Notes: generated by a model from the letters alone, not told the origin. Shown: positions 1,599-41,200, numbered from the stretch's first letter. The stretch: DNA of 45,400 nucleotides from Macrostomum lignano (GCA_002269645.1 NIVC01003673.1:1-45400); one strand, 5' to 3'. Numbers and translations are program-made.

Positions 1599-3301
1599 AT
1601 GATTTCGCAACTAATAATACTTTGCCTGCTCTCCACCGGTAAGATACCTAATCCATTCCGCAACTCACTTTGACCCAAATATCCCTGAACTCCCAATTAA
1701 TTTGCTGATTTCAGCCACCTGCGTGACTGCCAGCCAAGCTCCTGAGCAAGAGTACTACCTGGTCGATGAGCCCGTTACCATCAACGCCTCGGTGAGCAGC
1801 GAAGTGATCAATGTGACGGGGTGGCTTCCGAGATCGACTGCGTGACGAGGTGCCTGTCGAGAGGCTGCTCAGTGGCGGTGGCTCACGAGAGCATCGGGCT
1901 CTGCCAAATGGCCATGGTGTACGAAGGCCACTCGTCCGGGAGTCGCGTGCAGAGGCTGCTGGGCTCGGAGGCCGGAGCCAGGGTCTGGACGTTCGACGCA
2001 CCGCTAATTCACCTAAACTTCAGCATTGAGTTTCTCAGTAAGGACTTCTGCAAAATTCCAAAGTTTCGTTAGATCTGCGAATATTTATCTCTCTATGCTA
2101 AACTCCATCTTCCAGACTCCAGCACCGGTAGAAACGGCACCATCCAGCAGCTGCTGATCGACACCACCCACTGCTACCGGATTGAAGCTGCCGGTGCCAG
2201 CGGGAGTCCGGGGCTCGACAACCGAGCGGTCGAGGAGCTGTCATGGCAGGCAACTTCAGCCTGACTGCCGGCACCCTGCTGACCATTGTTGTCGGACAGC
2301 AGGGGGCCCCGCTAGCGGTGATGGCGGCGGAGGTGGCGGCGGAGGCAGCTTTGTGTACACTGTCAACGCCTCTGGCAACCCGCTGCTGCTGCTAGCTGCT
2401 GGCGGAGGCGGCGGTGGCTGCTACTATGACGCTGGTAAGTGCCAGAGCAGGGTCTCGTCTGACTGCTGAATCACCTGTTTGAGATGAGAGCCTTCATGCG
2501 AACGCGAGCATTGGTTATCAAAGAAGAATGAAGCGGATTAAAAAAAATTAAAGAGATAATTAACAATTATTTTCTTGATTAGGACTCATTATTTGACATC
2601 ATCAGGGTTGAATTATTTAACGAACGAGTGACTGAGCAAATTTAAAGTATGTACAGCTAGAGGAGAATGAGCAAAAGCAATGACTATGGCCCTAACCTTT
2701 GATTGATGGATTGGTTGATTGATTGATTGACTTATTGATTGATTGGTTATTTACAAGCTTACTACTTACTATTAGTAGTCAGTTATCAAAGTTAAAGCTC
2801 CTGTCGTGTTTCAAAATTCAGGTGCTGATGGCTCAGGAGACGAAAGAGGCACGAACTCAGTTGCTGGGATTCTGATTACTCTGGCTACGGCGGCAGCAAC
2901 GGTCAGGCGGGCTTCAGCAATTCTGATAATAATGACGAAGACTACTACCCGGCGGCTGCGGCGCCGGCTGGTTTGGCAAGAATACCAACGCTAAAGCCAC
3001 GCAGCACGACGGCGACCACGGTGGAAGCTTGGCTGACGGCTGGGTCGGCGGAGCCGTTAACACCAACTATAACGGCGGAACCGGAGGGTTCGGAGGCGGC
3101 GGCGGTGGCGGCAGCACCCCCACGAACGACAATGGCGGCGGCGGAGGCGGCGGCTTCAGCGGTGGCGGCGCCGCTGGCAATCACGGTGGCGGAGGCGGCG
3201 GCTCCTTCTGCGGCGGCCGCGGCTGCGCCGCCATCAGCGGCGGCAACACCGGCAGCGACCAGGGCTTCGTCAAGGTGCAGTCGGTCCTGGATTGCGATTG
3301 A
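1599..3301 (+). CDS. Secreted PAN-like + ALK/LTK-type glycine-rich domain protein, copy 1 (frameshifted as assembled; ~388 aa if 5 missing bases are restored)
   Basis: Exons 1599-1638, 1715-2037, 2116-2434 and 2822-3301, all GT-AG with phase-1 introns matching copies 2 and 3. Signal peptide MISQLIILCLLSTATC; motif CVTRCLSRGCSVAVAHESIGLC; GTIQQLLIDTTHCYRIEAAGASG..GRGAVMAGNFSLTAGTLLTIVVGQQG..GGGGGSFV..LLLAAGGGGG. There are 1-bp deletions near 1817, 2220, 2304, 2867 and 2949. Confidence 0.85.
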
Positions 3302-5082
3302 ACAGTTTTGATGATAAAACAACTTTGGTTGAGAATTCGAACGTTTTTGTCAATGTTATTTACCAGCCTAAGTAAGATTTCTAGTTAGTTAGAGGCAGGC
3401 GGTTGTGTGTAGCCTGGCGCACTTTAGGCGCGACATTGGCACACAACCGGCGAGAGCCATTACTGGCGCCCATTCCGCCGAATCCCCTGAGCAGGCACAC
3501 AAGCCCGCGGATACGTACGCAGTCATACGCACAGGCACACACTCACACAGGAGTTTACAGCGGCCCTGACTTTATTTATCGTTAGGCATGTACACTTCAC
3601 TGTGCCTTGGGGGTTGGGCCTCAAAGACGTTAATTTCAGGAGCAGAGCCAAGCCGAGATTCCAATTCAGCCCCAAATTAATGTGACTGCACTTGGTATCG
3701 AGCCTGGGCTGCTGGCACATCAGAGCGCCACGTTGGACCGCTGGGCTTCAGCCCCCTACCCGTGACCTGACACAACAATTCTATATAGCACATGCATACG
3801 GTTATTATTACTACTAGTACATTTTCTTCTTCGTAAACATCATGTACTTTCTGCTAGAAATTGCCTTCATAGTTGCTCCTGTTCTTTTTGCTTTTTTTGC
3901 TGTATTTTTCTTTCACAAAGTAAAAAAGGTTTTTCAATCTGTGATATTTAATTTGGGCCCTTTGGGCCAGTAAGCAACTTCTCTCGGACCTCCCCATGAG
4001 GGTGTAATTCGAATTTGTAATTTTGCTGTTACACCCTATCGCTCAGCGTGGTGATTACGTAATATACGCCCCGCAGTGTAAAGTGGAAGTTGTGCAACAT
4101 GCAATTAGGGAGATTCAAGAGAAGTTGTTTACTTGTGCAAGTTTTAAATGTTGCCATTTCTCTAAGCTCTGCATCATTAACAACCCGATTTGTTCGATTT
4201 CGATCGCAGCTTGTGCACTATGCAGTTCTTTATAACAAATAAACATTGCACAAAAGAATTTTAACACCTGATTCTTATTGTTATTTGAAAATCGTTGTAC
4301 ACGCCGCAGAGGTGTTCCATTTTAATTATTTAAGCTAAAGTTAAATGTTTGCGGTTAACAATCTTCTCTGTCAAGTAATGTCGCCATGGGCCATACTACC
4401 GAACATCGGTTAAGGAAGCAACTTCTTCGGTTCTAGGAAAGTCTGTTTCTCAAAAAACCTGTGCTTAATGTGCTTAAAAAGCAGTACAGAAGTGTTTTGA
4501 GTGAGTATTGTCAGCTCAACTAAAAGGGTCTGAAAGTCAGCAGAAAATTGAAAGGGGAGGAGAGAAGCCTCCTACCCTGCTGACGCTGAGCACCTGTCCT
4601 CCTGCCCCTCTCGTCCATTTAGTTGCCAAGTGCCTTTGTTGCCAAGGCGATCTTCTAAGTTATTAACCCGGCCCCCGCCAAAAGAGGAGGAAGATGCTTC
4701 TAACTTCTCAACACCCAACAAGAGTTTCTACTCCTGATCATTGTTCTTTGCTCAGCAAGACTCGCCTGCCGCCTTACTGGTCTTTGCTTTTGTTTTAAGA
4801 GGCTCCCAAATTCACTGGCAAAAACTGAGACAAAAGCTGAAAGCTGCCAGGGAAGCCTGACAGGATTGAGAGGCTGGCGTATTGACCGAAGGGTAAAAAT
4901 AGCGATGAAGAGGTTGTTTACCTGCCTTCCTTGTGGTATACTTAGGCTATTTAGCAAAATTCTCGCACCACAGAAATTGTGAGGCTCTCCTAATAAGCAG
5001 GGGTTCAAGTCTTTTTTCAAGGCGATACAAATCAAGACTAACCCTGATTTTATAATATTCAATCCTAGTTTTCTTTACTGAA

Positions 5083-7412
5083 ATGATTTCGCAAATAGTA
5101 CTACTTAGCCTGCTCTCCACCGGTAAGATACCTAATCCATTCCGCAACTCACTTTGACCCAAATATCCCTGAACTCCCAATTAATTTGCTGATTTCAGCC
5201 ACCTGCGTGACTGCCAGCCAAGCTCCTGAGCAAGAGTACTACCTGGTCGATGAGCCCGTTACCATCAACGCCTCGGTGAGCAGCGAAGTGATCAATGTGA
5301 CCGGGGTGGCTTCCGAGATCGACTGCGTGACGAGGTGCCTGTCGAGAGGCTGCTCGGTGGCGGTGGCTCACGAGAGCATCGGGCTCTGCCAGATGGCCAT
5401 GGTGTACGAAGGCCACTCGTCCGGTATTCGCGTGCAGAGGCTGCTGGGCTCGGAGGCCGGAGCCAGGGTCTGGACGTTCGACAAGATAAGCTCGGGACCT
5501 CGGGACAACAGGACTTTTATAAGTGAGCATTTATTTCTACTCTTTCACTTCGGCTTGTCTGGAAAGTCGAGAAAATGTGTGAAGCAAGCAAGAAAGAAGC
5601 AAGCTGTTGACATGGTGGACAAAGCTCAAGATCCTGACTTTATCGCCAGCCAAAGTAATAAAAGATCGTTGGCACAGTTCCCTAACAGCAGAAGTCGTAA
5701 ATTTCAGACACCGGAACCGGCCGGACCGGCTCCATCCAGCAGCTGCTGATCAACTCCACCGGGTGCTACCGAATTAAAGCTGCCGGTGCCAGCGGCGGCT
5801 CCAGCACAGCCAAATCAGGCGGTCGCGGAGCCGCCATCGCTGGCACCTTCAGCCTGACAGCCGGTATCCTGCTGACCATTGCTGTCGGACAGCAGGGCGG
5901 TGCTGGTGGATCGCTCAGCTGGGGGGGCTACACAGGAGCTGGCGGAGGCGGAGGCAGCTTCGTGTACACATTTAACACGACTGGTTTGCCAACACTGCTT
6001 CTGGCCGCCGGCGGTGGTGGAGGCGCCTGTTACACTACTAATGGTAATGCTTTTAATGCCTGTTAATCCAATACACTAAAAATGTTCTGTCGGTATGTGT
6101 GTGATCGGGCCTGACAATGATCAAGGTGGAATGCTGAGGCACATGTAACAAAGCTTCTAGTCTAAGAATTCTTGCTAAAAGGGGCTACTTTTCCTGCTGA
6201 ATCTCTGACATGAATAACAATAGAGACTATCAAACATGGTTGAATGTTTTTTTAGATTTTTTCTTTAGCTGCCTAAAACACATTGCAGTACGAGACCCCT
6301 TGCTACCCCGGCCCTGTCCCCCAGCGACCATGAGAGTGAAATGTAGTATTGTTAGTGGTAAATGTTTCATTCGAATTTAAAGAAGTTGGAAAAACATCGC
6401 AATGGGCCCGTCAACTTAAGCCCATAAAGTGGAGCCTGAGTAACATATGTACACAAATGATACGCCATTATTGTCACAATGGCACTAGAAGGAAGCTGGG
6501 TGGTTGCACTAAAAAGCGACGAAAATTGGACTACGTAGGTAGAATAAAAAATTAACATAGAATCCGATTTTTCTGAACGAGAAGCTTTATGAATATCAAT
6601 AGAGCAATAAGAAAGGCGCAAATTATCAAAAGACGAACACTGGATCTGCCTCCTATCAAAAGCAATAACAATTTTTGTGCTGAAAAAATGAAAACTTCCT
6701 ATCTCCGCTGTGTATTTTTTTCGGAGGAAACCTGCCTTCAAACATTTTTCAAAAACGAGGTTTCCTGTCCTTCCACTTAAGCCGTCCTTGATCCGTAACC
6801 GTAGCCGCCACTAGCTAGGCAGGATCTCCGTAGTCGCAATCCGTAACCGAATTAAGTTTTAGGGTCCTTCTGCTTCGGTTGTCCATCAGTGACTCTAATA
6901 TCTCGTAAATATACCCCTCCATGGTTAATATTTCAGGCGCCGCCGGTTCCGGAGGAACATCCGGTACGGCTTCGATACCCGGTGACACTCCATACTACGG
7001 CTACGGAGGAGCGAACGGTCAGCCCGGATCCAACAACCCCGCTGGAAGGAAAACAGACTCTTACGTCGGTGGCTGCGGCGCCGGGTGGCTGGGAAAGGCA
7101 GCAAACCCACCAAGTAACATGTACGATGGAGGTCGAGGCGGCAGTCTGGCTGATGGCTGGATTTGTGACAGCGCTGGGACTGCTGGCGGCTTCGGTGGCG
7201 GAGGCGGAGGAGCTAATTACCCGATGACGAGTCTCAACGCCGGTGGCGGTGGCGGCGGCTACAGCGGCGGCGGTGCCGGCGTCGCTGGCAATCACGGCGG
7301 CGGAGGCGGCGGCTCCTTCTGTGGCGGCAGCGGCTGCGCCGCCAGCAGCGGCGGCAACACCGGCAGCGACCAGGGCTTCGTCAAGGTGTGGCCGATTGAT
7401 CAATGCAATTAG
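5083..7412 (+). CDS. Secreted PAN-like + ALK/LTK-type glycine-rich domain protein, copy 2 (intact, 391 aa)
   Basis: Exons 5083-5122, 5199-5522, 5708-6043 and 6937-7412 sum to 1176 nt, open throughout, with GT-AG introns. Signal peptide MISQIVLLSLLSTATC, a 4-Cys PAN/apple-like core, then TGCYRIKAAGASGG..GGRGAAIAGTFSLTAGILLTIAVGQQG..GGGGGSFVY..LLLAAGGGGG, typical of the ALK/LTK glycine-rich domain (Pfam PF12810-like). Confidence 0.9.
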
Positions 7413-8316
7413 TGGGGCTTTTTGGGAGAAAAGCTAAAATGATGGCGTATCGAAGGAAACTGGAAGCGAAAATTGCCAAAGCCCTTATAACAAATCATTT
7501 TAAAAAGTTTATTTGTTAATTTATTTATAAAATCTCTTTTCGAAGTCATGCAAGATTTTTTGTGGCAGAGTCAACGAAATTTTGAATAACGCTTTTTCTG
7601 CTTTTGAATTTTAATGTTACAATCGTTTTAAGGAAATTTTTACAAACTAAGCCTAAATTATCATTATTAAACTTTTCTCTGCCTCCAATTTCACTCGCAT
7701 GCCCTATTGAATGCTGTAGTGTTCGTTGTCGCCAGAATATTTATATTTTTTTATTCAAAAGGCACCTTTGGCTTTCGCCATTTTTTGTTAAAATCGATTT
7801 TTTATTGAAAAATGATTCGTATGCGATAATAGTAGTCCATATATACTTAATTTTCTCTGGTGATAATTTATCTTGTTTATGAAGTTATTTTTCTCAAATG
7901 CCGGCACGTCAATCAATGCTTTTATTTTGTACCAGATTCTTAATCTTTTTTTGTTACTCAAGTCCAGCTTATTCTTTTTGTTTATTTATTCTAAACTAAA
8001 CTTATTGCTTAACTTTTCAACCGTATTTATCCGCTACGACGCGTCTATTTTAATTGAAACAGTTGAAACTCACTACTCGAATATACGAAATATACTACTA
8101 CCCTTGTCCACGTAGTTTTGCACATTTTTGCATGAAGCACTATCAGCTAGCTACTCAGATACCTATAATGTGCCCGTTGTTTAGTTTTGGAAGTGCAGCG
8201 GATAAAGTGAGGTACAAATAACATGCAAGATTGGATCAGCTGATAGACATCGATGCAGTCTGCTGGACACGATAACAATAATAATTATGATTGCACCTAC
8301 CCTAATTGGGCCAGAT

Positions 8317-8545
8317 GTGCAACCGTTAGACGCAATGCAACCTATTAGACAGAATGCAACCTGTTAGACACAATGCAACCTGTTAGACACAATGCAACCT
8401 ATTAGACAGAATGCAACCTGTTAGACACAATGAAACCTGTTAGACACAATTAAACCTGTTATACACAATGCAACCTGTTAGACACAATGCAACATATTAG
8501 AAACAATGCAACCTGTTAGACACAATGCAACCTGTTAGACACGAT
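8317..8545. repeat. 19-bp tandem repeat (AATGCAACCTGTTAGACAC), about 11-12 copies
   Basis: Read directly from the sequence. Confidence 0.9.
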
Positions 8546-9548
8546 GGAATAGATTTTTTGGAGCAGTCGTGGCAGTTGGGTACGATGGCTGACAACCAGG
8601 AAAGGGGACCTTAAGCGGCTCAAGGAAGGAACTGGAGTAGCCTCTTCTTGGTGTGTCAGGATACAAACTAAGATCCTGCTTGCTTCTGTAACGGCCTATT
8701 ATAATGTTGTATAACTACGAGTACATAACTCTTTTAATCATTGTTGCATACATAATTCTTTGTTCTCAAAACTAGCCTTATCTATTAACTCTTGCCTTAT
8801 CGATTCATATTTGCGCATAAATAGAATCTTAATACTTACCGCCTTTTTCTTGCGTATTTTACGAGTAAACTGCTGACACTTTATTATTAGTATTAGATGT
8901 TTATTTTGTTAGAAAATTAGTAACTTCAGCGCGCATCTCTGATAAAAACTTTTCAATAAGAATATTTTTGTTTTAAACTATCCGCCATTTTTAGTAATAA
9001 GAGTATAAATACAAGCGTATTAGCCTCTCTAGAAGGCAACTTGTGCTGGCTTGAAATTAGGCCTGGCGCCGAAAGAACAGTTTGTTCTAAAAATAGCCTT
9101 GTGTCAGACGTGTTAAACATTCGCCGACACTTATTCAGAAACTTCTACAGACACTTTAGTTTCTGTCGTACGAATCGTAGGAACAAGCATTAAATTTGTT
9201 TATTCCTAACAAACTTTCAGTAAAATGCTTTATTTTAAGCTTTTTTTGCTTTATTTTATTAAATATGAATCATGAAATTTGTTATTCTGCATAGATTCTC
9301 TTCACGTGAAGAAGAATGTCAAATTTGTCCAGGACACTTCCTAATTCATATTTAATAAAATAAAGCAAAAAAAGCTTAAAATAAAACATTGGCTTTTTTG
9401 GCTTAAAAACTGTGGGAGGGTAAGGGAGTGAGACGTCCCTCTGGTAAATAAACCAGATAACACCACAAGATAATTTGCGAATCTTGTCAGATTCACTACC
9501 GATTTCCTTGTTTGAGGTGCGAAACTGGTGAAACCACCAGATTCGTCA

Positions 9549-9890
9549 CCAGGTAATTTTTTGTTTTCTTGTTTGACTGTTATCTGGTGAGTTATCTGAA
9601 TTTCACCAGATAACATGGCCCGAATCTTGCTTAGAAATCAGATTACATGACAAAATTTGCCACCAGATAATTTTTTGTTTTCTTGTGTGATTGAATCTTG
9701 TTTGAATCGGAATTTCACATGATAATATGGTGCGAATCTTGTTTGAAAATCAGATAACAGTACAAGATTCGCCACCAGGTAATTTTTTGTTTTCTTGTTT
9801 GATTGAATCTTGTTTGAATCGGAATTTCACAGGATAACATGGTGCGAATCTTGTTTGAAAGACAGATAACAGTACAAGATTTAAATCAGG
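9549..9890. repeat. Left subterminal ~112-bp tandem units (about 3 copies) of the CACTA-like element
   Basis: Units start CACCAG(G/A)TAATTTTTTGTTTTCTTG at about 9548, 9661 and 9773. Confidence 0.8.
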
Positions 9891-10390
9891 ATAACTGTGC
9901 TTTATCTAGTCTGTAAGAAACCTGTGTGAATCTGAAATTTACCGGATAAAAGGATGCGAATCTGGTTTGCAAACCAGATAATGGAAAAAGATTTTAATCA
10001 AGATGCCTTTGTGTTATCCGGTCTGTAAGAACCCGTTGTACTTTTCACCCATATTTTTTTCAGAATTTCGTGATCCAGGCCTGATTTATTAATTGATTTC
10101 CAAATGAAGGCCCGGATCAGCATTTTTAGCCCGGAATAGCCCTTTTTCCGGAAATGTGATCCTGCAAAAGTTCGGGAAAAAGGAAAGCTGTTCCGGCTGC
10201 ATTTTCCAAAATTTTTCACCTTGAACACTGCTAAATTCTAATTGTAGACCCAAATTTCAGGTTTTCCAAATGAAAATGTTCTGGATGAGATTTCAGGAGT
10301 TCAGTCGGAATTCCTCAGTGATCTAGACCAAGTGATTCGGCAAATCCACAGGGATCAGCTCCCATTGACTCGAATCTCTATGAAGTTATG

Positions 10391-10856
10391 GATAAGACTG
10401 GACTTCGCGTCTGTTGTGGCTCAAGGCAGCTGCTATGCTGACCTGCGATGGATAATCAATCCTCGCTTCTGTTGTGGCTCAAGGCAGCTGCTATGCTGAC
10501 CTGCGATGGATAATCGATCCTCGCTTCTGTTGGGACTCAAGGCAGCTCATAAGCTGACCTGCGATGGATAATCAATCCTCGCGTCTGTTGGGACTCAAGG
10601 CAGCTAATATGCTGACCTGCGATGGATAATCAATCCTCGCTTCTGTTGGGACTCAAGGCAGCTAATAAGCTGACCTGCGATGGATAATCAATCCTCGCTT
10701 CTGTTGGGACTCAAGGCAGCTCATAAGCTGACCTGCGATGGATAATCAATCCTCGCGTCTGTTGGGACTCAAGGCAGCTCATAAGCTGACCTGCGATGGA
10801 TAATCAATCCTCGCTTCTGTTGGGACTCAAGGCAGCTGATAAGCTGACCTGCGAGG
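10391..10856. repeat. 58-bp minisatellite, about 8 copies
   Basis: Unit GATAATCAATCCTCGCTTCTGTTGGGACTCAAGGCAGCTNATAAGCTGACCTGCGATG, starting at 10451, 10509, 10567, 10625, 10683, 10741 and 10799. A stray copy lies near 11265-11320. Confidence 0.92.
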
Positions 10857-12403
10857 GGTAAAGTGCCATATATCAGCAAACGCTAGCGCTCGTAATGTGA
10901 GGCCGTGCCCACCCTCCCTGCAGGTGATAGCTTTGTTTGCTCCGACAAACTATTGCATTCTTATTGTGCTGGAGAGGTTTGACTCCCAATGGCATGTAGT
11001 CTGTCGCGGTTACTTAGTGTATCAGATTACCCTATTATCTGGTGCAGCTGAGTGTCTAGATGGAGCTGTGGCATGGTTCCAAAAGCTCCTACTGGCCCAG
11101 TTCTAAGGTAAGCCTTTTTTAAGACAGACGTTCTTCTAGCTCTTGCTAGAGCATGCTCCATTGGGTTGTCTAAAGCGTCTGCAGTGTTGGTGTATGGTCA
11201 CCAGTGAGTGATAATTGAACCCCGCTTCAACCGATGAATCAAAGTTGAGCAGTTGACTGAAAATGCTGACCTACGAGGGGTAATCAAACCTCGCGTCTGT
11301 TGTGGCTCAAGGCAGCGGCTAAGAGTAGTCACTTTTATTTGACTACGCGGGTCAATCTTTCATCCGAGGGGTAATAAAGCCTCGAAATTGCAAGGTGAAT
11401 TGATCTGCTTTTCGGCGGCTCTGTAGCGTCCGTAATGTGAGGCTGTGCCCATCCTCCGTACAGGTGACAATAGAAAAATTGTTGCGCCCTGATTGTGTGC
11501 GAGAGGTTTGACTACCACTGGCATGTCGTCCATCGCACTAGCGACATCTGGAACGCCAAGTCGGTTGGATATTACCTTTGGCATACGGGATTGCGAAGAC
11601 AATTAGGTAAGAGTTTCCAGCGTAGTCGGCATTTCGTGGACGCAACGAAGCCAGCGCCGCGCGAGCCGGCGCATCAGATGATAGCATTCACCTTGTCTCC
11701 GGTCTACGAGCAGCCGATCAACGAAAGCCAGTTGATTCCGGACGACGACTATGCTACGAATGACAATTCTATCGACGCAGCTGACATTACTAGTGAACAG
11801 TCTTACAATCTGGCAATGATTGTCGGCGAACCGTCGCTGTCTGTTAGAGCTAGACGATCGAGCGTGTATGTACATTACTGTTTCTTTATAACTGTGTATA
11901 TTTCGGAGAAACTGCCTTCCATCGCCATCGCCATTTAATTTAACTTTAATAATGCAGAGTCGTTCCATTGCGCCGGCATATAATGCAAGCCCCCGTCAGT
12001 GGTCTCATTAATCGCCTTCCGTGCGCGCGACCCGATCTTTCAAACGTCTGGCTCACGCGTCGACTGCCATCAGAGTCGCGTCCGAGTACAGCAGGTCCGA
12101 CCTGCGACTCAGCACCAGCTCGCAGCAGATCACCAATTCAGTAGTATCAATTAGTAGCCACAGTATAAGTAGGTCTACTTATAACTGGACTGTCGAAACT
12201 CATACGTATGCCACGCTGTTCTCCAGAAGTTTTCGTTCCTGTTGAGCTTGTTCCTGTTCCTTGTTTAGTTTGTATAAGGCGCTTACAAAGTACAACCCGC
12301 TGTTAAATATAGAGATGCTACTCATAAAATCTTGAATCACCAACTTCTTATACGCATCTTTACTGCGAAATTTGATGTCAATGCCTTCCGGCTTCTTTCG
12401 CAT

Positions 12404-12640
12404 GGATTACCCGACTGTTACCTGCTCAGCGAATCCTTTTTGCCAGACAGGATAACAAACAAGATAACAAACAGGATAACACGATGTTTCCCTGCAGGAT
12501 TCGCATGAATTACCCGACTGTTACCTGGTCAGCGAATCCTGTTTGCCAGACAGGATAACAAACAAGATAACACGATGTTTCCCTGCAGGATTCGCACGAA
12601 TTACCCGGCTGTTACCTGGGCAGCAAATCCTTTTTGAATC
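12404..12640. repeat. Right subterminal ~90-105-bp repeats of the CACTA-like element
   Basis: Three units ATTACCCGACTGTTACCTG..CAGCGAATCC..GGATAACAAACAAGATAAC; the third is cut by the LTR insertion. Confidence 0.75.
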
Positions 12641-12643
12641 TTG

Positions 12644-14630
12644 TGATGAGGACGCACTTTTTCCCAAATCCCGCGCTAGCACATGGGCTCTAAACTTACT
12701 AGCCTACTAACAGTGGGCACTGGGCATTTTTATCCTTTTTCTGCGAATTTTCATGGAATCTATACTAGATATAATGTCTGGCCATACTAGTAGTCATAAT
12801 AACATAGGCATTGCTTTTGGGTCATAAATCATCGCTTTCGAAGCTGGTCTGACAGCCACCTGCGCCTCACTCAGTGTTGAGGCGGGCGCCAGATGGTCTG
12901 AGAGGATGCGGGCGGTAGCTTTTTTCTCATCATCTTGACAGGCCAACAAGATTTATGAGGTCAGAGCCTATTGTTCGGATTCACTCAAGCGTGTGACAGC
13001 TTTGACAGCTATGCGTTTTACCCCTAAAAGTACCTTGGGATTAGCGATTAGCGATTTCTCTTCATTATCTTCACTTTCTATTTAATAAGAGCTTTCTAAT
13101 GTATATTTTTTCATTAATTTCTGTCAATCCTACGCGAAAGGTCATAAATCATTTTGTTGCGATTTTGAGTGATTTATGGCCGCACCTGTCATCTTTTTAC
13201 GACCCTGTGGGAACTGATAGGATCTCTCGGTCACGTGATTCTGGGTAGCAACAAGCTTAGCCAATCAGAAAATTCGGCGCTCATTTTAACAAAACGGCTC
13301 AGCCAATCAGAATCGACGTGTTCCATTATAACAAACTGCGGTCCAGTTGGCGGCTATTTAAACCGGAGTTTCTGGCCCGCTCGGAGGCATCTCTTGCTCG
13401 GGCCCAGCACGCAACTTCTGGTTCCCGGAGCGCGACCGTCGTTTCTTGATCCCCGGATTGCGACTTTCCCCCATCATCATCAAGGACGAATCCCCCGGTC
13501 GTCAGCAGCGAACATCAAGCGAAGATCATCACCTGCTAGCTATCAGCGAAGATTGTGTCAGCATCATCCCGAGTCTACGGCTACAGAGCATCGAGCCGAT
13601 TCGGTCACTGTGGATTACCTGGTCTCCGGCTGTTGAGTTTCTGATTGGTTGGGTGAGAGGCTACATAGACTTGCTTGATTGGGTGATCCCTTATCTGTCC
13701 CCTGTTGCAGTAGCTGAATTAGGCGCACACTTTTGCTCATTTTGTTCAGTAGTGCTGTTGCTGAGGCAGAAATCATTCAATAATACTGCTAGTAGTCGAA
13801 GGCTCCAATTCAATCTGAAGTGTGAAGTGAACTAAGGAGAAGGTTAAATCTAACAGTTATTTTTATCGGTTTTAGTTCTTTGTTCGCCGATGGCTCAGAT
13901 GAGTAGCTAAGCTAGTAGGCGCCGGTCACAGTGGACCAATGGCAAGGCAGTTCTCAGTCGACCAATCTATCAAATCAGTGAGCAAAACTGCCAGAAGTGC
14001 AGAATCGGCGCCAGAGATGTACTTTGTGCACTCTAGGGTAGCCAAGCGGCTCGGGTAAATGAATTATGCGGTCTCTGAAGTTCGAGTTAGTCTATCATCA
14101 GCGCCATGGGAGGCTAGTTGGCGCGTTGAAGGCCAAAAGTACATATCTTCGTATTTAGCAATGTAATAGTACATGTAGCTACCCCATAGACTCGCCACTG
14201 CAAGAATCCCCTGCACAAGTCCCCTCTGTACCTGCATGGCCAATGCGATCTAGTCCCAGCAGTGTCCCTTATCATCGGCTATGACTTTGAGATGGACAGC
14301 AAAAAGACACTAGCTGGCAGGTAGGTGCAAAGCCCCTTCTAGTCGGAAGCCCGATTTCGAGAGTCCCGGTGTGGTGAGCCAGGGCGCACGGGCTGGTGGC
14401 AGCAAGTTAGTTGATCTGCGGATTAGCTAATTTCTACTTTCAAAATTCTCCCTGCTCGTCTCTCGCTGTCCCTCCCTTAGCTATAGGACCTAGACTGCTC
14501 GCCACACGATCAAGCTACCATGGGGCTGACCATCTGACAGGAGTGGGGGGCCAGGTCTCTAATAGATTTATTTCTGAGCCTGAGGCCCGAAGGCTTCCCT
14601 AACAAGGAGCCCGAAGGCCGAAACCCATCA
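12644..14630 (+). mobile_element. Solo LTR-like element, copy A (1987 bp)
   Basis: Ends TGATG..CATCA with a 4-bp TSD CTTG on both sides. It is homologous end-to-end to 28353-30322 (inverted), has a TATA-like TATTTAAA near 13355, and no credible ORF. Strand is inferred from the TATA-like motif. Confidence 0.8.
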
Positions 14631-15098
14631 CTTGTTTGAAACAAGGAAACGTAAGATTTCGTCACGCAAACAAGATTCATACAAGATAACATTTTGCATA
14701 ACCGGAATAGGGCATGTTATCTTGTTTGAGCGAATGTTATCTTGTGGTGTTATCTGGTTTATTTACCAGAGGGGTGCCTCAAGCTTTTTAGCTTCTGCTT
14801 GAACACTCTATGGCAGCAGAGCTGCTGTGGGAGGTAATGGGTGTGAGCAAAAATAGGCACGGGAGGCTAGTGGTTAAGATTACTCTACCTTCCTATTCCA
14901 TTAGGCTTTTCGGGAGACGGGAGGTAGAGCTTAACTCCCACTTATCCCACTTACCCACTTAACTCCCCCAACTATTAGGCACCCGGCTTTCATTCAATTC
15001 CCTATTAAGCGCATCCCTCCCATGTCAGCGTCCCTTATCAGTTATTAGAATTCCCCTAGTGCGCCAGTTTCCCAAGCAACTCTGATCCACCGCGAAGC

Positions 15099-15157
15099 CC
15101 TTATTCCCCTTCCCCTCCTTATTTCCCTTCCCATCCTTATTCCCCTTCCCCTCCTTA
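15099..15157. repeat. 18-bp tandem repeat (CCTTATTCCCCTTCCCCT) x3
   Basis: Read directly from the sequence. Confidence 0.8.
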
Positions 15158-15989
15158 GATATCCGGACTGAGTAGAAATATAGTGCCTTGCCGCTCGGAC
15201 ACACCACGCCACCAGGAGCAACCTAAGGCTTACTCCTTCTAGTAGTAGAAATTGTATATTTCTTTCCAAATCCTAAGAAATCCCCGGCAACCCCGACCCC
15301 TCTTACAACAAATTTGATTGCAGCATTGGGATTGTTAAACATAGAGCTAAGAGGCCTGTAACACTTCTAGCTATCAATATTTGCTTCTAATAGCTACTGC
15401 TGTACTGTACATAATAAAATACCGCATATTTGTTAAAATCATCGAATACTCCAGATACAGCTTTTAAAAGCTCGTATACGCCAAGCACTTAAACCAAAAT
15501 CAAACTCTCTTCACTGACTAACCAAACATCTAAAAGCCTTACGGATTATGAAATCCATCATCCTCCTCTCTACACAGCTAATTTATTTCGTACCCTACTA
15601 AGTTTTCAGTTGCTACCACTCAGATTTTCGAAGATGACAGATGAATCGACTTGTTTATTATTTTAACAGTGTTTATGAAGTAAATTTTAAAAATTAAAAG
15701 AAAAGTTTTAAATTTTATTAGAAAATAATTATTGGAAATAAGACGCGAAACAAGAATAAAACAAAGAATAGAAAACTGAAATTTATGTTGTGACTGAGTT
15801 CTAGGACAGGTTTCCGCACAAAGATTGATTATAAATAAACATTTTTAATCCGCAAATAGCACTACAGAAATATTCGCGTTTATATTGCGTAAATTGATCT
15901 TTTGAAAACACGATTTCATAAAAAGAAAAGAGAAAAAAAATTAAAATAAACACAAATATTTGCAATCAACAAATTTAGTGAAACGAGTG

Positions 15990-18580
<2,591 letters not shown>

Positions 18581-19075
18581 GCTGCTACATTACATGAATA
18601 GATTGATAGATAGTCAGAATTTAATAGGCAGGTCATACACTGTTAAAGTATAAAATTATAATTATATGCGTCGAAATCCAATTATATATAGTTAGAAAAT
18701 TCAGACAACATTATAAAACAGAAAAATTTGCATGCAAGTTTTTTAGTTTCATTTATAGAAAATAGAATAAGGATTGATGTAATCAATGTATCAATATTAT
18801 TCTTTTTAAATTGGTTCTTCCCAATTTTTTTCAATCCTACGAGTGACGATCTACATTAACACAAACTGCATCATTTTCTTAACGTCCAAGATTTTGAATT
18901 GGACAATCAAAGCTCCCTTATTAAGATAACCATGAAGTTTCTTTTCGTTGTTACCTGAACCTGAAGCAAAGAAAGTTCTCGAATGCCTAAACTCTTGCCA
19001 ATTAATTTTGCAAACTGAAATTGGTCTCTGCTGAAAATCTTCTACTGAATCGACGAAAGTTAAGTCGTAAAATTT

Positions 19076-22000
19076 TCAGCCACAAGTCGGAATCGACTGC
19101 ACCTTGACGAAGCCCTGGTCGCTGCCGGTGTTGCCGCCGCTGGTGGCAGCGCAGCCGCTGCCGCCGCAGAAGGAGCCGCCGCCTCCGCCACCGTGGTCGC
19201 CAGCGATACCGGCGCCGCCGCCGCTGTAGCCGCCGCCGCCGCCTCCGCTATTATCATCTTGTGAATATTGGCCCCCACCGCCGCCGCCGCCGCCGAAGCC
19301 GCCAACACCCGCGCCGCTTCCTTCGCCGGCGGCGCCGCCCAACCAGCCGTCGGCAAAGCTGCCGCCCCGGTCTCCATCAGTCGTTAAGTTTCTGGCGTTG
19401 ACAGCCTTGCCCAGCCAGCCGGCTCCGCAGCCGCCAATACCATGGTCGTCTTTCCTCATAGAGGGATTGTTGGATCCGGGCTGACCGTTAGCTCCGCCGT
19501 AGCCGAAGTACGAATTGTCCCCGCCAACCGAATTCGTCCCGTTCACTTGAGCTGCCCCGTCAGCTCCTGTAGGCAACAATTACATTTGCACTTGCAAAAC
19601 ATTTTTACAACCGAACTGAAAATTAATTTTACTGAGTCTGTTATATAAAGACCAGGCTAGTGAAAAGCACAACAACCTGTAACCGTACAAAGATGACTTT
19701 ATCTCTATGCGTTTGCTTAAGTTTGCTATCTTCATTTAAACGTTTTTTGAAGATCTATCGAAGTTAGTACTATCGGTAGATCGAACCAGAATCCGACTAG
19801 TCAAACATCCTGGACAACTGAGGCCATGCAGTTCTGGCTCCAAAATTAATTACCACTTTGTGGCAATATTTTAAATTCAATATTTAACCCGCCTAAAGTC
19901 TTGATGATTTTACCGTCTTTTCTGTGGCAGCCACCGCCGCCTCCGCCAGCAGCCAGCAGCAGCAGCGGGTTGCCTGAGGCGTTGACAGTGTACACGAAGC
20001 TGCCTCCGCCGCCACCTCCGCCGCCTTTATCGCTAGCGGGGCCGCCCTGCTGTCCGACAACAATGGTCAGCAGGGTGCCGGCAGTCAGGCTGAAGTTGCC
20101 TGCCATGACTGCTCCTCGACCGCTCGGTTTTTGGGTTCCAGGACTCCCGCTGGCACCGGCAGCTTCAATCCGGTAGCAGCCGTAGGTGGCGTTGATCAGC
20201 AGCTGCTGGATGGTGCCGTTTCTACCGGTGCCGGTGTCTGGAAGATGAAGTCTATCCAGGTGACTTGAGCAGGTCAAAGGTTTCAAGGAAAAAACATTGC
20301 TAAATGAGCGATGAAAGGTCAAATGTACCATTGTTTGCATCATTGCAGTTGTCTAACAACTAAACTTGTACTTTGGCGCCCCTTGGTGCTGGCGCCCCTT
20401 GGTGCTGGCGCCCCTTGGTGCTGGCGCCCCTTGGTGCTGGCGCCCCTTGGTGCTGGCGCCCCTTGGTGCTGGCGCCCCTTGGTGCTGGCGCCCCTTGGTG
20501 CTGGCGCCCCTTGGTGCTGGCGCCCCTTGGTGCTGGCGCCCCTTGGTGCTGGCGCCCCTTGGTGCTAAAGCCCCTTGGTGCTGGCGCCCCTTGGTGCTAA
20601 AGCCCCTTGGTGCTGGCGCCCCTTGGTGCTAAAGCCCCTTGGTGCTGGCGCCCCTTGGTGCTGGCGCCCCTTGATGCTGGCGCCCCTTGGTGCTGGCGCC
20701 CCTTGGTGCTGGCGCCCCTTGGTGCTGGCGCCCCTTGGTGCTGGCGCCCCTTGGTGCTGGCGCCCCTTGGTGCTGGCGCCCCTTGGTGCTGGCGCCCCTT
20801 GGTGCTGGCGCCCCTTGGTGCTGGCGCCCCTTGGTGCTGGCGCCCCTTGGTGCTGGCGCCCCTTGGTGCTGGCGCCCCTTGGTGCTGGCGCCCCTTGGTG
20901 CTGGCGCCCCTTGGTGCTGGCGCCCCTTGGTGCTGGCGCCCTTGGTGCTGGCGCCCCTTGGTGCTGGCGCCCCTTGGTGCTGGCGCCCCTTGGTGCTGGC
21001 GCCCCTTGGTGCTGGCGCCCCTTGGTGCTAAAGCCCCTTGGTGCTGGCGCCCCTTGGTGCTAAAGCCCCTTGGTGCTGGCGCCCCTTGGTGCTAAAGCCC
21101 CTTGGTGCTGGCGCCCCTTGGTGCTGGCGCCCCTTGGTGCTGGCGCCCCTTGGTGCTGGCGCCCCTTGGTGCTGGCGCCCCTTGGTGCTGGCGCCCCTTG
21201 GTGCTAAAGCCCCTTGGTGCTGGCGCCCCTTGGTGCTGGCGCCCCTTGGTGCTGGCGCCCCTTGGTGCTGGCGCCCCTTGGTGCTGGCGCCCCTTGGTGC
21301 TGGCGCCCCTTGGTGCTGGCGCCCCTTGGTGCTGGCGCCCCTTGGTGCTAAAGCCCCTTGGTGCTAAAGCCCCTTGATGCTAAAGCCCCTTGGTGCTGGC
21401 GCCCCTTGGTGCTAAAGCCCCTTGGTGCTAAAGCCCCTTGGTGCTAAAGCCCCTTGGTGCTAAAGCCCCTTGGTGCTAAAGCCCCTTGGTGCTAAAGCCC
21501 CTTGGTGCTAAAGCCCCTTGGTGCTAAAGCCCCTTGGTGCTAAAGCCCCTTGGTTCTAAAGCCCCTTGGTGCTGGCGCCTTTAGTAGAACCCAAAATTAG
21601 CACCCAAACACGGTGCCCACAAGATGGTCGCTGCATGTCGGTATAAAATGCTAATGCCCAATAAAAAATCCTTTTCTGTTTTCACGAAGAACTGAGTGAC
21701 TATAGAGTCCAATGTAATATTTCTAGTTCCTAAGAGAAGCTTTGAACACATAAATTTAGAAAGTTTTTTTCGCTGAAGAATAGAATTTTTTCAATTTCGA
21801 TTTCTGCTAAATGCTCGTTTGCAGATTAACAATGACGCTTACTGAAAAACTCCCTGCTGAAGTTCAGGTTAACCATTGCCGATGTGGTTGGCGGGTCTGC
21901 TGTTGTTGTTGTTATTTCGGGCGGCGAAGTAGCTATCGTTGTTGTCGTTGTTGCTTGTTGGGTATCGAACGTCCACACCTTGGCTCCGGCCTCAGAGCCC

Positions 22001-22357
22001 AGCAGCCTCTGCACGCGACTGCCGGCCGAGTGACCTTCGTACACCATCGCCATCTGGCAGAGCCCGATGCTCTCGTGAGCCACCGCCACTGAGCAGCCCT
22101 CCGCCTGGCACTTAGCCGCGCAGTCAATGCTGGAGGTGATGCCAGTGACATTGAAAACCTCGCTACTCACCGAGTCGTCAATGACAAACGGCCCGGCTAC
22201 CAGTTTGAAGAATTTGCTTTGTGTCGAATTGCAGGTTGCTGGAAAAGTTTTTTAACTACGAATTAAGTAACGTTCTTAAAATTTTAAGCGATTATTAATT
22301 CGAGAAGCTATACGTACCGAAAATTAGACAAAAAGCGAAGGCTCTTAGCAAAATCAT
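19076..22357 (-). CDS. Secreted PAN-like + Thr-rich linker + ALK/LTK-type glycine-rich domain protein, copy 3 (intact, 416 aa)
   Basis: Exons 22357-22318, 22238-21843, 20237-19914 and 19566-19076 sum to 1251 nt, open, GT-AG, with the same phase-1 structure and the same 40-nt first coding exon (MILLRAFAFCLIF). CAAKCQAEGCSVAVAHESIGLC core; ends GFVKVQSIPTCG. Confidence 0.9.
20375..21579. repeat. 16-bp minisatellite (GGCGCCCCTTGGTGCT; variant AAAGCCCCTTGGTGCT), about 75 copies, in intron 2 of copy 3
   Basis: Read directly; it explains the WCWRPL/LAPLGAGAP ORFs. Confidence 0.97.
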
Positions 22358-24624: not shown

Positions 24625-25728
24625 CACCTAATTTTTGCATTCAATTTCAGCAACAAGCTGGCATTCAGAATCGGCAATCTAAATTTAGCCAACCAAATCT
24701 TCATTCAATTTAAGCATGCTCGCATTCCATTTCAGCGAAGCACATTCAATTTCGGCAATCTGCATTCAATTTAATTTTGTCTCAAACTTGTCTGCTCTTC
24801 TATGAATAAATTTTATTGACGCGTGCAGATTTTGCACTCAATTTCGGCAGTCTGCATTCAAATTCAGCAAAATTTTATTAGCTAAACGTAAAACGAAATA
24901 AATGTCGTCCAATACATGTACAGTGTCATAGGGAACAGAAGCAGAAAATCGAAGTCACGTGAAGTGTGGCCCTTCAGTCTCCATTGATGTGCATCCTGGC
25001 CAGGCATCTCGGTAAAAGCTGAAGCAGTGATTGTACCACTGGAGACACTTGTCCTGAGTGACGCTGTCGTTCACTGTTAGATCGGCAAAGCGCATCAGCT
25101 CGTCCCTTCGATATTCAGCCAGTGTACGCCCAGCGCGAGCTTCGTCGGATGGATTGATGAAAACTTCGCGGCTGTCACTGAGTTCACTTTTAATGGCCGC
25201 CTTCCATGCGGAGATGGCGGTCTCAACGGGTGTTAAAAATGGGCTGTATCTAGGGAGTCGACGGAACTCAGCCAGTCCCACAACCTCTTGTAATTCAGCG
25301 TCATTATGGCTGCTGACATTATCAAAAATAAGGTATGCAAGTTGGTGCGACCAGGCCATTTGAGCGTTACCCATCACAATTTGCAGAAATTCGGCGAATC
25401 TCTCCTTTGTCATGCCGCGAGTGTACATGGAACTGAACATTCGTCTGTGGTTGAAATCAAATGTGTTTTGCTGAATTTGAATGCAGATTGCCGAAATTGA
25501 GTGCAAAATCTGCACGCGTCAATAAAATTTACCCATAGACGAGCAGACAAGTTTGAGACAAAATTAAAATGAATGCAGATTGCCGAAATTGAATGTGGTT
25601 CGCTGAAATGAAATGCGAGCATGCTTAAATTGAATGAAGATTTGGTTGGCTAAATTTAGATTGCCGATTCTGAATGCCAGCTTGCTGAAATTGATGCGAA
25701 TTTGGTTAAAATTGAATGCAAAAAGGTG
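24625..25728 (-). mobile_element. Internally deleted Tc1/IS630-like element with ~250-bp TIRs
   Basis: 24625-24872 and about 25467-25728 are near-identical inverted repeats starting CACCT. TA lies on both sides (24623-24624, 25729-25730). The repeats enclose a DDE_3-type transposase C-terminus. Confidence 0.85.
24974..25430 (-). pseudogene. DDE_3 (IS630/Tc1-like) transposase C-terminal fragment
   Basis: TKERFAEFL..LIFDNVSSH..LPRYSPFLTPVETAISAWKAAIK..VTQDKCLQWYNH. Adding one T at 25014-25017 gives FLPRCLARMHINGD-stop. The N-terminal half is absent. Confidence 0.85.
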
Positions 25729-26945: not shown

Positions 26946-26964
26946 TAAGTAAGTGGTCGCCATC

Positions 26965-27515
26965 ATAAGCTCGAAAAATCACTATAGCTCGAAAAGTCAC
27001 ATCGTCAAACTGATTTAGCAGACACCATCACAAGCTCGAAAAGTCACAGGCTCGAAAAATCAAATCGTCGAAAAGTTAAACAATCACCATCGCAAGCTCA
27101 AAAAGTCACAAACTCGATAAGTCACATCGTCGAAAACTGATTTAGCAGACACCATCACAAGCTCGAAAAGTCACAGGCTCGAAAAATCAAATCGTCGAAA
27201 AGTTTGACAATCACCATCGCAAGCTCAAAAAGTCACAAACTCGAAAAGTCACATCGTCGAAAAGTCACATCGTCGAAAAGTCACATCGTCGAAAAGTCAC
27301 ATTGTCGAAAAGTCACATCGTCGAAAAGTCACATCGTCGAAAGGTCACATCGTCGAAAAGTCACATTGTCGAAAAGTCACATCGTCGAAAAGTCACATCG
27401 TCGAAAAGTCATATCGTCGAAAAACTGATTTAGCAACAACCATCACAAGCTCGAAAAGGCACAAGCTCGAACCCTAACCATAACCAAGGCACAGTTAAAC
27501 CCTAACCCTAACCCT
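26965..27515. repeat. 16-bp (AAAGTCACATCGTCGA) array with a 127-bp higher-order unit, ending in (CCCTAA)n-like hexamers
   Basis: CTGATTTAGCA recurs at 27010, 27137 and 27425. Near-pure 16-mers span 27241-27420. ACCCTAACCATAACC..ACCCTAACCCTAACCCT lies at 27471-27515. Confidence 0.88.
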
Positions 27516-38266: not shown

Positions 38267-41200
38267 TCATTTGTTTTCAGACAACGATTCTGACAGAGAC
38301 TTATCGGCTCCGACGAACAGACACCGACTACCCTGTTCCCGGCGCCGATCAATCACTTTGCTAGATTCATACTTCTTGCGAGCGTGGGCTTTGGGGTCGA
38401 AGAAGAGTGGTCCACGGTGTTGCCGCAAGCTTCTTTGACTGTCGCCAGTGTAATAAAGTTTCGCAGCTCGTCCCAAGAGTCGCTCATTGGCACTGGTACC
38501 CACTGGCAGCAGCATCCAGCGCAGCTTCATTCTTACCTCGAGCGTGTCGTTGAGCTGACCGCCGATTTTTTGCTGCGAGCGTATTGTCGCGTAGTAGGAT
38601 TCGACAATCACTTCTAAAAAAACGAAAGTTTCCATAATTACAAAGTATTAAAATTCTGCATACCTAAAACTTTTCAGACTAGCTCATGCTCACCTGTGCC
38701 GCCGCGGTGAAGAGCAAAGTCGAGCAACAGACATGTGGCTTGACCAGCGCGGGAATAAACCCGAGGGTCCTTGTAAAAAGCCGCATATACTGCTGACTCG
38801 TTAAGCGTGGCGCAGACAGACTCGCCTGGCTCTGTAGTCAGTCGCAGTCGAAGCGCCAGATCGCCTGACTTGCGGGGTTCCGCAGAGACCTTAATAATGC
38901 GACCCTGTACAGCAGGTGTGAGCCAGTTATCTCGGCCGTCGCCTGAGATGAATGCCTCGTGAATAGTCGTGATAAAAGCCTCCAAATACTTCCGTGATAG
39001 GGACGACTTCACGTGCGGTGCGAGACGCTCGTGCTTTTCAGCAAGGCGGACGAGGTGCTTCATCTCAACGGCATGAGTTGCATTCTCGACTGCCTCTTCG
39101 ATGTCCTCGGCAGTCAACAGGCTAACGGCAGATGCTGCATCCAGGACAATTGACGGATCCCTGACGCAGCATTTCTCCAATCGCGCAAGAAAGGAGCGGT
39201 GCAGGCTTGAAGCCAACTGGACTAGGTCCTGGAGAGAATTATAAATATATATAAGTGCGTTAATACACTAATCATGACATGACAGAAGTTTATACTTTTA
39301 CACAGTAGCGGTGCTAAAACTCAGAGTTAAAAATTACCCGCTCCATATCCTGGGACTCTCGGAGTTGCCAGTCGACCCTGCTGCTTGGCCTACCGGTGCG
39401 TTGGTTGCCTCGAGCGGTCACCGTGGGCTTGTCCGGCAGTACAAGCCATCCGCCCATCAATTCGACCGATTTGAATGAGCCTCCCGGTTTGATGGACTCA
39501 TAGAAGGGCTGTAAAAATTGAAGTGAAGTAGGAAAGAAATGAATGCGCAAATTTAAGCCCTTTAAATATAATTTAAGCCCTTACATATAGGCCCAAATCA
39601 TTTACCTGCAGTCGTGGGTAATCCTCAACTCGGAAAACCTCTGAGTGATCAGCAAAATGCTTCGCTACCCGATCGGCCAGCACGGAAACCTTCCAGTGAG
39701 GCAACTGGAGGTTCTGAGCCACTTCCATCAGGGAGACTAGTGGACCAAAAAGGTCCTGCAGGCACAGCAAGTCAAAAACGAAGTCGCTTCCGAACATTGC
39801 ATATTGCGACTCTTCGTCATCAGAGCAGCACGGATTTTCTGCTCGAAATGCGGTGTGCAGAGCGGCGTAACTTGCCTCAATGGCGGACCACTGTCTAAAA
39901 AAAGAAGCGTAGTGGGAGGACATTAAATAAATTTTTATTTACGCTTTTCATCACCATTTTTATTAGACTATTTATTGATAAAAAATAGCTGGTACTTACT
40001 TGATTGCAGAGCTCGTGAAACGCTGGGCTGCGAAATGCGACATCGCTCGAGCTGAACCGTCTGACGCCTCTTTCAGTGCTGCCTCACCACGACCATGGCT
40101 GAAATAGGTAGCAAAAAAATTCGCTCGCTTTATAAACCGGCGCAATGACTCCCCATCAGGTCCATCGCGAACATCAGTGACGGCCAGATTCAAGTAGTGT
40201 GCCGCATCCCACATCACAGGAATCTTTTCGACGTCATCGACAGGGGCCCCGAGCTCGGTCCGAATAGCGCGGCAGAATGTGCCAGCTTGGTACTGGCCAT
40301 CAGCGACGATACCCATGATGCTTGCAGTGGGCGTCTTCAACACCTGATAGATTCAAAATGATGAAATTAAGCACTCGTCTAATTTAAAGTTTAAAACTGT
40401 TAGAATCCCTTCAATCGTCCAAAAAATAATACGTTAGTGACGGTTACCTTAAGTGTCTGCATTAGTCTTTTGGCCAGGGCTTCCCCATCTGCTTGCATTG
40501 CAGAGTCGTACACAGCAGGTGCACCCGCAGGAATCGCTACGGCTTCGCCATTTTCGCAGCGAGCTAGAAGGAGTGCCGCCTGATTCGTTGTGCGGCCTGG
40601 GGTGCTTTTGTCGCAGGTGATGGTCAGCAGAGGCGGCTGTCCAGTCGAAGGCAGAGGACACCGCAGAAACTCTGCACTTTCGTCGTTTACGCAGGCGTCT
40701 AATAACTTCCAAAGTTCTTTGCAGAATGCACTTTGTAAGGAGGGAGGGTAGGTGAAATGACAAAGTTATTATTTATTAAGTATATCTGATTGCATTTAAA
40801 TAAAATTATTTATAGATATGTTTGCAGGTAAACTTACAAGCCATGGCCAATCTGACCAACTTCACAATCAGACGCATCGAGCAGACTCATTAGAGTCTCG
40901 TAATGCGAACCCGCAGCAGCCATTTCAATTGTCGCAATAGCACAGCGGAGAAGGGTGCGCACAACCTTGCCTTGTGCCGTCTGTTGTACGACTTCGGTTC
41001 GGTAGTCCTTCACAGCCGAATAGTGGGTCTTGCTTGTCGAACAGTGGTTTACGAGTTCATTGCGAAATTTGGAGAACTCGTCCACACCACTTAGCAAACC
41101 TGCGACTCGTTCGGCTGAAAGTCGTAGCCCTCTGCTGAAGGACTTATTCTTTTCAGTGGTGGTGGGGTTCCTGGAAAAGTGAAAAGCTCGGTACATTAAC

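Follow-up and report, generated by a model that had tools for sequence, protein, structure and literature searches.

A stretch of 45,400 nt from the flatworm Macrostomum lignano (NIVC01003673.1:1-45400; hereafter, the window) was found to contain a cluster of three paralogous four-exon genes, whose predicted products combine a putative signal peptide, a PAN/apple-like cysteine module and a glycine-rich domain (GRD) of the type known from the receptors ALK and LTK. Copy 1 (1599-3301, + strand) and copy 2 (5083-7412, + strand) are arranged head to tail, and copy 3 (22357-19076, - strand) lies in the opposite orientation (tail to tail); the nearest gene 3′ of copy 1 is thus copy 2, and copies 2 and 3 face each other's 3′ ends across a gap of 11.7 kb. 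The gene models were obtained by three-frame translation and DNA alignment of the copies, and the motif scans described below covered the whole window in six frames. The similarity between copies is far above chance (tblastn E 1e-35 to 1e-112), with copy 3 being 66% identical to copy 2, and tblastn searches of the window with the proteins of copies 2 and 3 did not find a fourth copy.

The three genes share one exon plan. Exon 1 (1599..1638 in copy 1, 5083..5122 in copy 2, and 22318..22357 in copy 3) supplies the ATG and a hydrophobic leader, which reads MISQLIILCLLST in copy 1, MISQIVLLSLLST in copy 2, where it is signal-peptide-like, and MILLRAFAFCLIF in copy 3; in copy 1 this exon is 90% identical to that of copy 2 and ends at a phase-1 donor (G|GTAAGA). 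The PAN/apple-like module is encoded by exon 2 (1715..2037, 5199..5522, and 21843..22238, respectively), with the motif C-x3-C-x4-C-x11-C present in all three copies (DCVTRCLSRGCSVAVAHESIGLC) and, in copy 3, an additional Thr-rich, mucin-like linker of 27 residues. The N-terminal half of the GRD is located in exon 3 (2116..2434, 5708..6043, and 19914..20237), and its C-terminal half, together with the stop codon, in exon 4 (2822..3301, 6937..7412, and 19076..19566), with copy 2 ending in GFVKVWPIDQCN-stop and copy 3 in GFVKVQSIPTCG-stop. GT-AG borders were found at all nine introns, each of which is in phase 1 and at a homologous position in the three copies; the PAN-like exon is therefore symmetric (1-1). 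As modelled, copies 2 and 3 are intact four-exon coding genes, with open readings of 391 and 416 aa.

Domain composition of the predicted proteins

The window proteins contain 24% glycine, and several lines of evidence support the assignment of their glycine-rich part to a genuine ALK/LTK-type domain, in which a TNF-like fold is predicted to be combined with polyglycine segments (TG). Copy 2 matched the Pfam family PF12810 (ALK_LTK_GRD) over residues 138-303, scoring 31.5 bits where the gathering cutoff is 24.5. A family profile built from 47 members matched nine distinct sequences in the PDB, all of them ectodomains of ALK, LTK or Caenorhabditis elegans SCD-2 (E 1e-15 to 6e-9); with LTK, the match extended over profile positions 19-307 of 311. 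For the full-length fold, AlphaFold2 (AF2) was run on P0053 (PAA57358.1), a homologue from M. lignano, with an alignment of 59 rows in which the window exons were represented. The model reached a mean predicted local distance difference test (pLDDT) score of 83.8. Its glycine-rich stretch, with pLDDT of ~80-97 (mostly 85-97, falling to 79-80 in two blocks), contains no helix or strand according to DSSP, which is how polyglycine-II segments appear to that program. A Foldseek comparison of the model with the PDB returned 21 matches at E<=1e-3, all to the TG/GRD region of ALK, LTK or SCD-2 (E 8e-10 to 2e-5); the best was 7nx1 (E 8.4e-10), and the next match outside these three proteins had E>1. 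The structural resemblance to the ALK/LTK domain that a preliminary description of this DNA had proposed, to be sought with PF12810 and structure prediction, was thus obtained, by profile for copy 2 and by fold for its homologue. In the receptors, this is an established glycine-rich domain built as a polyproline-II bundle (PMC13243192), and it forms part of the conserved ectodomain (PMC10605310).

The cysteine module was more elusive at the sequence level. A word-indexed database search with the PAN-like module alone gave no match. An exhaustive phmmer search with the module against 1.84 billion representative sequences gave eight, one of which was a repeat artefact; the seven real matches comprised six M. 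lignano proteins and one ENA fragment, and they link the window module to flatworm relatives at a phmmer E of 7e-15. In every real match the module is followed by a GRD, save in the ENA fragment, which is truncated at 133 aa. When 12 modules were aligned (two from the window and ten from M. lignano or ENA relatives), six matched Pfam PAN_1, with a best E of 2.5e-5, the copy 2 module not being among them, and several homologues carry the UniProt name "Apple domain-containing protein". An AF2 model of window:5201-5521 (copy 2 exon 2; pLDDT 75, with a core at 80-91) showed one helix packed on a sheet, and its best 16 Foldseek matches in the PDB, as well as most of the others, were PAN/apple folds, including the N domain of HGF NK1, plasminogen PAp, the Sarcocystis lectin SML-2, AMA1, and the apple domains of Toxoplasma MIC4. 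The N-terminal PAN domains of HGF and plasminogen and the apicomplexan apple lectins share with the exon 2 module the single helix on a beta-sheet and a C-x3-C...C...C core, but are only 10-17% identical to it in sequence; the window module has four core cysteines and no Pfam PAN match. In an hhalign comparison of the window-family module with the PAN_1 domain of coral proteins, the cysteine core was in register, at only P=0.009 and a probability of 4%. The term "PAN-like", which the preliminary description had used, is justified because of the predicted fold together with transitive homology through those flatworm relatives that match PAN_1, and the module is best described as a divergent, lineage-restricted version of PAN/apple.

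The ends of the predicted proteins would suit secretion. The hydrophobic N-termini (MISQIVLLSLLSTA and MILLRAFAFCLIFA) have mean Kyte-Doolittle values of 1.8-2.5, copy 2 has small residues at -3/-1 (S-T-A), and the P0053 model begins with a helix at residues 2-17, from which we infer that the copies carry a short, putatively cleavable signal peptide. At the other end, the stop codon follows six to seven residues after GFVKV in all three copies, a position that coincides with the C-terminus of P0053 and of coral homologues. No C-terminal hydrophobic segment was found in the window proteins. The six-frame scans of the window detected neither the kinase motifs HRD, DFG and GxGxxG nor an EGF or LDLa cysteine pattern, and the ten longest open reading frames (ORFs) between copies 2 and 3 gave no meaningful Pfam match and no kinase. 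Pfam finds only PF12810 in the window proteins, with no transmembrane helix, kinase, membrane-proximal EGF-like, MAM or LDLa domain of the kind that marks an ALK/LTK receptor. The stops, the motif scan and the intergenic ORFs agree with the earlier proposal that the proteins end directly after the GRD. An Rfam search of the entire window returned nothing relevant. Several N-x-S/T sites are present in the window proteins and, together with the Thr-rich linker of copy 3, suggest glycosylation.

Relatives in flatworms, corals and bacteria

The three window genes have no database record of their own, as judged by protein searches and by a look-up of the exon 4 ORF for exact matches. The closest full-length relative is the M. 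lignano protein A0A1I8GD17, with 45% identity over 79% of copy 2. This protein, together with A0A267E764 (PAA57358.1, BOX15_Mlig028980g1) and A0A1I8JP14, represents an uncharacterised group that resembles the window proteins in its putative signal peptide, cysteine module, order of module and GRD, and C-terminus, and differs from them in sequence (39-45% identity). The cysteine module is common to this group and the window proteins and, among the 1.84 billion representatives searched, is almost confined to them. The same apple and GRD layout is found in ~26 M. lignano UniProt entries, which form ~12 clusters at 90% identity and bear automatic names such as "Apple domain-containing protein" and "receptor protein-tyrosine kinase". 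The multigene family that had been postulated from the window is therefore borne out by these clusters. By the same token, on sequence comparison the architecture is not new, and the window genes are further members of an uncharacterised apple+GRD family. As to novelty, no functional description was found, in agreement with the preliminary description, and the architecture itself was already present in the Macrostomum and Porites proteomes, a possibility which that description had foreseen.

Outside the flatworms, the nearest counterparts are coral proteins. Two Porites harrisoni proteins (ABFA07_017308 and ABFA07_017842) likewise place a PAN domain before the GRD and have neither a transmembrane helix nor a kinase, and coral GRDs (from Porites, and from the "loricrin-like" proteins of Acropora and Montipora, which combine EGF and GRD) are ~40% identical to that of the window. 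The Porites PAN, by contrast, is a canonical PAN_1 that can hardly be aligned with the flatworm module, as noted above, and the Porites gene has an additional linker exon and encodes its whole GRD in one exon, whereas in the window the GRD is split between two exons by a phase-1 intron. The Porites harrisoni locus JBDLLT020000386.1 (10001-13388) contains such a three-exon PAN_1+GRD gene, with the entire 299-aa GRD in a single exon. Its middle exon carries the motif SIPELPAVSCEEIK...YWM...AYCNM, which does not occur in the flatworm genes; it may resemble the C-terminal propeptide of fibrillar collagens. Many GRD ORFs of ~300 aa were also present in metagenome (ENA) contigs and are taken to be coral-derived because of their close similarity to the Porites proteins.

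The domain is not limited to animals, and stand-alone GRDs occur widely, both in corals and among the surface proteins of bacteria. Bacterial PF12810 "glycine-rich proteins", including Bacillus FN3-GRD proteins, Bacteroidota proteins that join a GRD to a type IX secretion system (T9SS) tail, and PEP-CTERM proteins, resemble the window proteins in presenting a stand-alone extracellular GRD (59-73 bits against copy 2). Their partner domains are different (T9SS sorting tails, FN3, Calx-beta, pilin-type leaders, and PEP-CTERM), and the PAN module is absent from them. The ectodomains of ALK, LTK and SCD-2 (PDB 7nx1, 7lrz, 7n00, and 7lir) share PF12810 with the window proteins and were the sole PDB matches of the domain, in the family profile search (E 1e-15) as well as in the fold comparison made with P0053 (E 8e-10). 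The identity in the structural alignments is ~16-28% (20-28% for ALK and LTK, and 16-17% for SCD-2), and the MAM, LDLa, EGF-like, transmembrane and kinase parts of the receptors have no counterpart in the window proteins. With copy 2 as a single query, phmmer against the PDB gave no match, and no ALK/LTK chain was obtained at E<=0.01. Coral and bacterial stand-alone GRDs scored 59-105 bits against the same protein (up to 105 for the coral proteins), although composition bias may inflate some of these scores. The window proteins are thus nearer to stand-alone GRDs than to ALK/LTK, and these comparisons argue that the window family did not arise recently by truncation of a receptor or ALK gene.

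Evolution of the cluster and its surroundings

The divergence among the three copies is distributed unevenly along the coding sequence (CDS). In sliding windows of 60 nt, copies 1 and 2 are 97-100% identical over the first ~300 nt of the CDS (in windows after the first), and their intron 1 (76 nt in copy 1) is 100% identical. Over exon 3, copy 1 instead matches copy 3, with 90-100% identity in individual windows and 92% overall. Copy 1, with its copy 2-like 5′ part and its copy 3-like exon 3, is therefore a mosaic of the other two. Two tracts stand out in all pairs, namely the second half of the PAN exon and the final ~150 nt of exon 4, where identity reaches 88-95%; elsewhere it is only 50-70%. 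The synonymous divergence (dS) in these shared tracts (the PAN core and the 3′-terminal part of exon 4) is 0.08-0.31, compared with 1.1-1.8 in the rest of exon 4, a contrast that indicates patchy gene conversion among the three copies, as read from the sequences, rather than constraint alone.

In the unconverted segments, the ratio of nonsynonymous to synonymous divergence (dN/dS) is 0.2-0.35, including in comparisons with copy 1, and 0.27-0.34 between copies 2 and 3 despite dS>1; purifying selection has therefore acted on all three copies throughout most of their history. Values approached 1 only where short tracts had been converted recently and differences were few. Within unconverted exon 4, 37 of the 50 glycine columns are conserved, compared with 36 of the 73 non-glycine columns, and thus the paralogues differ mainly in the loops between the glycine motifs.

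Copy 1 departs from the other two genes in its reading frame. Its spliced sequence of 1162 nt is not a multiple of three, and comparison with copies 2 and 3 reveals five single-base deletions, at ~1818 in exon 2, at ~2210 and ~2305 in exon 3, and at ~2868 and ~2949 in exon 4. All five sites lie in G/C-rich contexts beside short runs of G or C, and the first falls in the tract where copies 1 and 2 differ at only a handful of bases. When the five gaps were bridged, copy 1 read through 388 aa without a stop and retained all of the conserved motifs, apart from a few substitutions (e.g., GQPG to GQAG). Copy 1 is therefore either a very recent pseudogene or the product of consensus indels in a duplicated region that is difficult to polish, with little to choose between the two. 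The earlier proposal of three four-exon paralogues was accurate as to the limits of the cluster (the ATG of copy 1 lies at 1599 and that of copy 3 at 22357) and the number of exons; it did not hold for the integrity of copy 1.

Repeats make up most of the region between copies 2 and 3, which contains satellites and the remnant of a retrotransposon. The latter is an R1/jockey-like non-LTR (long terminal repeat) element at ~16013-18581 (- strand), in which an RVT_1 domain (17238-18368; E 3e-32) is accompanied by an RNase H tail (16088-16702). Its coding sequence is spread across three frames in a region of 61% GC; at the protein level, it shares 80-91% identity with a transposon-derived stretch of A0A1I8G307, a chimeric M. 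lignano gene model. The best database matches of its reverse transcriptase are metagenome proteins (54-83% identity). Most of copy 3 intron 2 is filled by a minisatellite of ~1.2 kb (20374..21579), composed of ~75 copies of the 16-bp unit TGGCGCCCCTTGGTGC with 94% matches. Since 16 is not a multiple of three, all of its frames read the same, largely open 16-aa repeat, and it yields many spurious ORFs on the + strand. A coding role for this repeat was considered and rejected, as it is flanked by a phase-1 donor (21843) and an acceptor (20237) that are conserved with copy 1. AT-rich satellite arrays were located at 8318-8546, 9539-10031, 10405-10861, 26960-27471, and 45089-45394, with repeat types of 19 bp (x12), 112 bp (x4), 58 bp (x8), nested 16/32/62/127 bp and, at the end of the window, a (TCTTC)n microsatellite.

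Beyond copy 3, an ORF of 186 aa at 24955-25515 (- strand), with 20-bp repeats on either side (24702-24772 and 25468-25642), matched Pfam DDE_3 (E 8.8e-9); it is probably the remnant of a Tc1/mariner-type transposase. A row of seven ORFs (104-305 aa) at 38267-42190 (- strand), one of which holds ~13.5 copies of an 18-bp repeat encoding SSDQQQ (41684-41926), gave no Pfam match even at a relaxed threshold, and may represent a multi-exon gene, one that has decayed, or a mobile element.

Possible roles of the putatively secreted proteins

The reading that we favor, with moderate confidence, is that the cluster encodes secreted PAN/apple and TG-domain proteins with a soluble extracellular binding role, which arose in a lineage-specific expansion of the Macrostomum type. 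Each protein of ~390-415 aa would consist of a signal peptide, a divergent PAN/apple module, a short linker (Thr-rich in copy 3), and one complete TG domain, predicted to be a TNF-like beta-sandwich with a polyglycine-II (PGII) lattice, after which it ends. The genes would belong to the apple+GRD expansion best known from M. lignano, with duplication, patchy gene conversion and purifying selection shaping the cluster. Glycan or protein docking is the established general role of the PAN/apple superfamily, and the known relatives of the proteins are all extracellular or surface proteins. Once secreted, the products may act as soluble binders, in which the PAN/apple module would dock on a glycan or protein partner, while the rigid GRD would present its non-glycine loops, the parts most variable between paralogues, as a second surface for binding or assembly. 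A role in mucus, matrix or surface recognition appears more likely than one in signalling. The mucus, adhesive and microbe-binding functions suggested in the preliminary description are candidates only.

Several observations weigh against this interpretation. The window's own cysteine module does not match Pfam even at E<=10, and the fold match of the exon 2 model is modest (HGF NK1, E 7.6e-3, probability 1.0, TM-score ~0.5). Copy 3 alone scores 11.9 bits against PF12810, which is under the cutoff, and the full-length fold was predicted for a homologue that is 39% identical rather than for a window protein. The leaders are short (13-14 residues). Positive or diversifying selection between the paralogues, looked for in the dN/dS comparisons, was not seen. 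The searchable literature offered no functional account of receptor-less GRD proteins from flatworms, corals or bacteria, and the one paper citing PF12810 states that it permits no conclusion about function. The binding role itself is one that we infer.

The proteins might alternatively be structural, forming the bulk of mucus, rhabdites, eggshell, cement or adhesive, and assembling through flat PGII surfaces. Their glycine content, the mucin-like linker of copy 3, and the concerted evolution of a multicopy, tandem family would suit such material, and coral homologues of similar composition have been named automatically "loricrin-like" and "glycine-rich cell wall structural protein-like". However, the glycine runs lie within a compact, confidently folded globular domain rather than in long low-complexity repeats, and the proteins are small, with a single pair of domains and no repeats. 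We consider this alternative rather unlikely, with the proviso that it overlaps the soluble-binder reading and that the two are inseparable by sequence alone. It is very unlikely that the cluster is decaying or an annotation artefact, i.e., that it consists of unexpressed duplicates or of exons of a larger gene. The five frame-breaking deletions of copy 1 and a neighborhood rich in transposons and satellites would suit such decay, but copies 2 and 3 have open frames, intact splice sites, and a dN/dS of 0.27-0.34 at dS>1, their start and stop positions match those of a full-length annotated homologue, and no receptor-type coding exons were found elsewhere in the window.

The preliminary description had also raised the possibility of ALK-pathway decoys. 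A free TG domain could capture a Jeb/HEN-1-type ligand or heterodimerise with the ALK ectodomain as a co-receptor, and in ALK and LTK the same fold binds ALKAL ligands, as seen in the complexes 7nx0, 7ls0, and 7n00; the absence of a transmembrane helix and kinase from the window proteins would also suit a decoy. We regard this role as highly improbable because of the distance in sequence from ALK, copy 2 being nearer to the coral (up to 105 bits) and bacterial (59-73 bits) GRDs, the lack of an invertebrate ALKAL, and the size of the family, since a dozen diverged clusters of M. lignano paralogues are ill-suited to a single pathway. Invertebrate genomes have no ALKAL/Augmentor homologues, and the invertebrate ALK ligands are different, LDLa-containing proteins (PMC10605310).

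A broader and more speculative scenario, to which we assign a low probability, is that the stand-alone pairing of PAN and TG reflects the ancestral, pre-receptor use of the TG domain. It would have served as a soluble recognition module common to cnidarians and flatworms, and a tyrosine kinase would later have acquired it by exon shuffling. In flatworms, the paralogues might then constitute a diversified recognition repertoire or a set of ligand traps, with variable loops on a polyglycine-II scaffold, much as gp38 of phage S16 carries hypervariable loops on its PGII sandwich.

The window genes are thus soundly annotated additions to an uncharacterised family rather than a new kind of system. 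ALK and LTK are important receptors in cancer and development, and to our knowledge, the function of the TNF-like/polyglycine-II domain is known only from its part in ligand binding by these two receptors. The cluster, along with the flatworm, coral and bacterial proteomes, suggests broad use of this domain as a free secreted module, combined in the present case with PAN/apple. Macrostomum offers RNA interference, in situ hybridisation, and transgenesis, and knowledge of the binding partners of these soluble proteins would reveal the role of the domain before its use in receptors.

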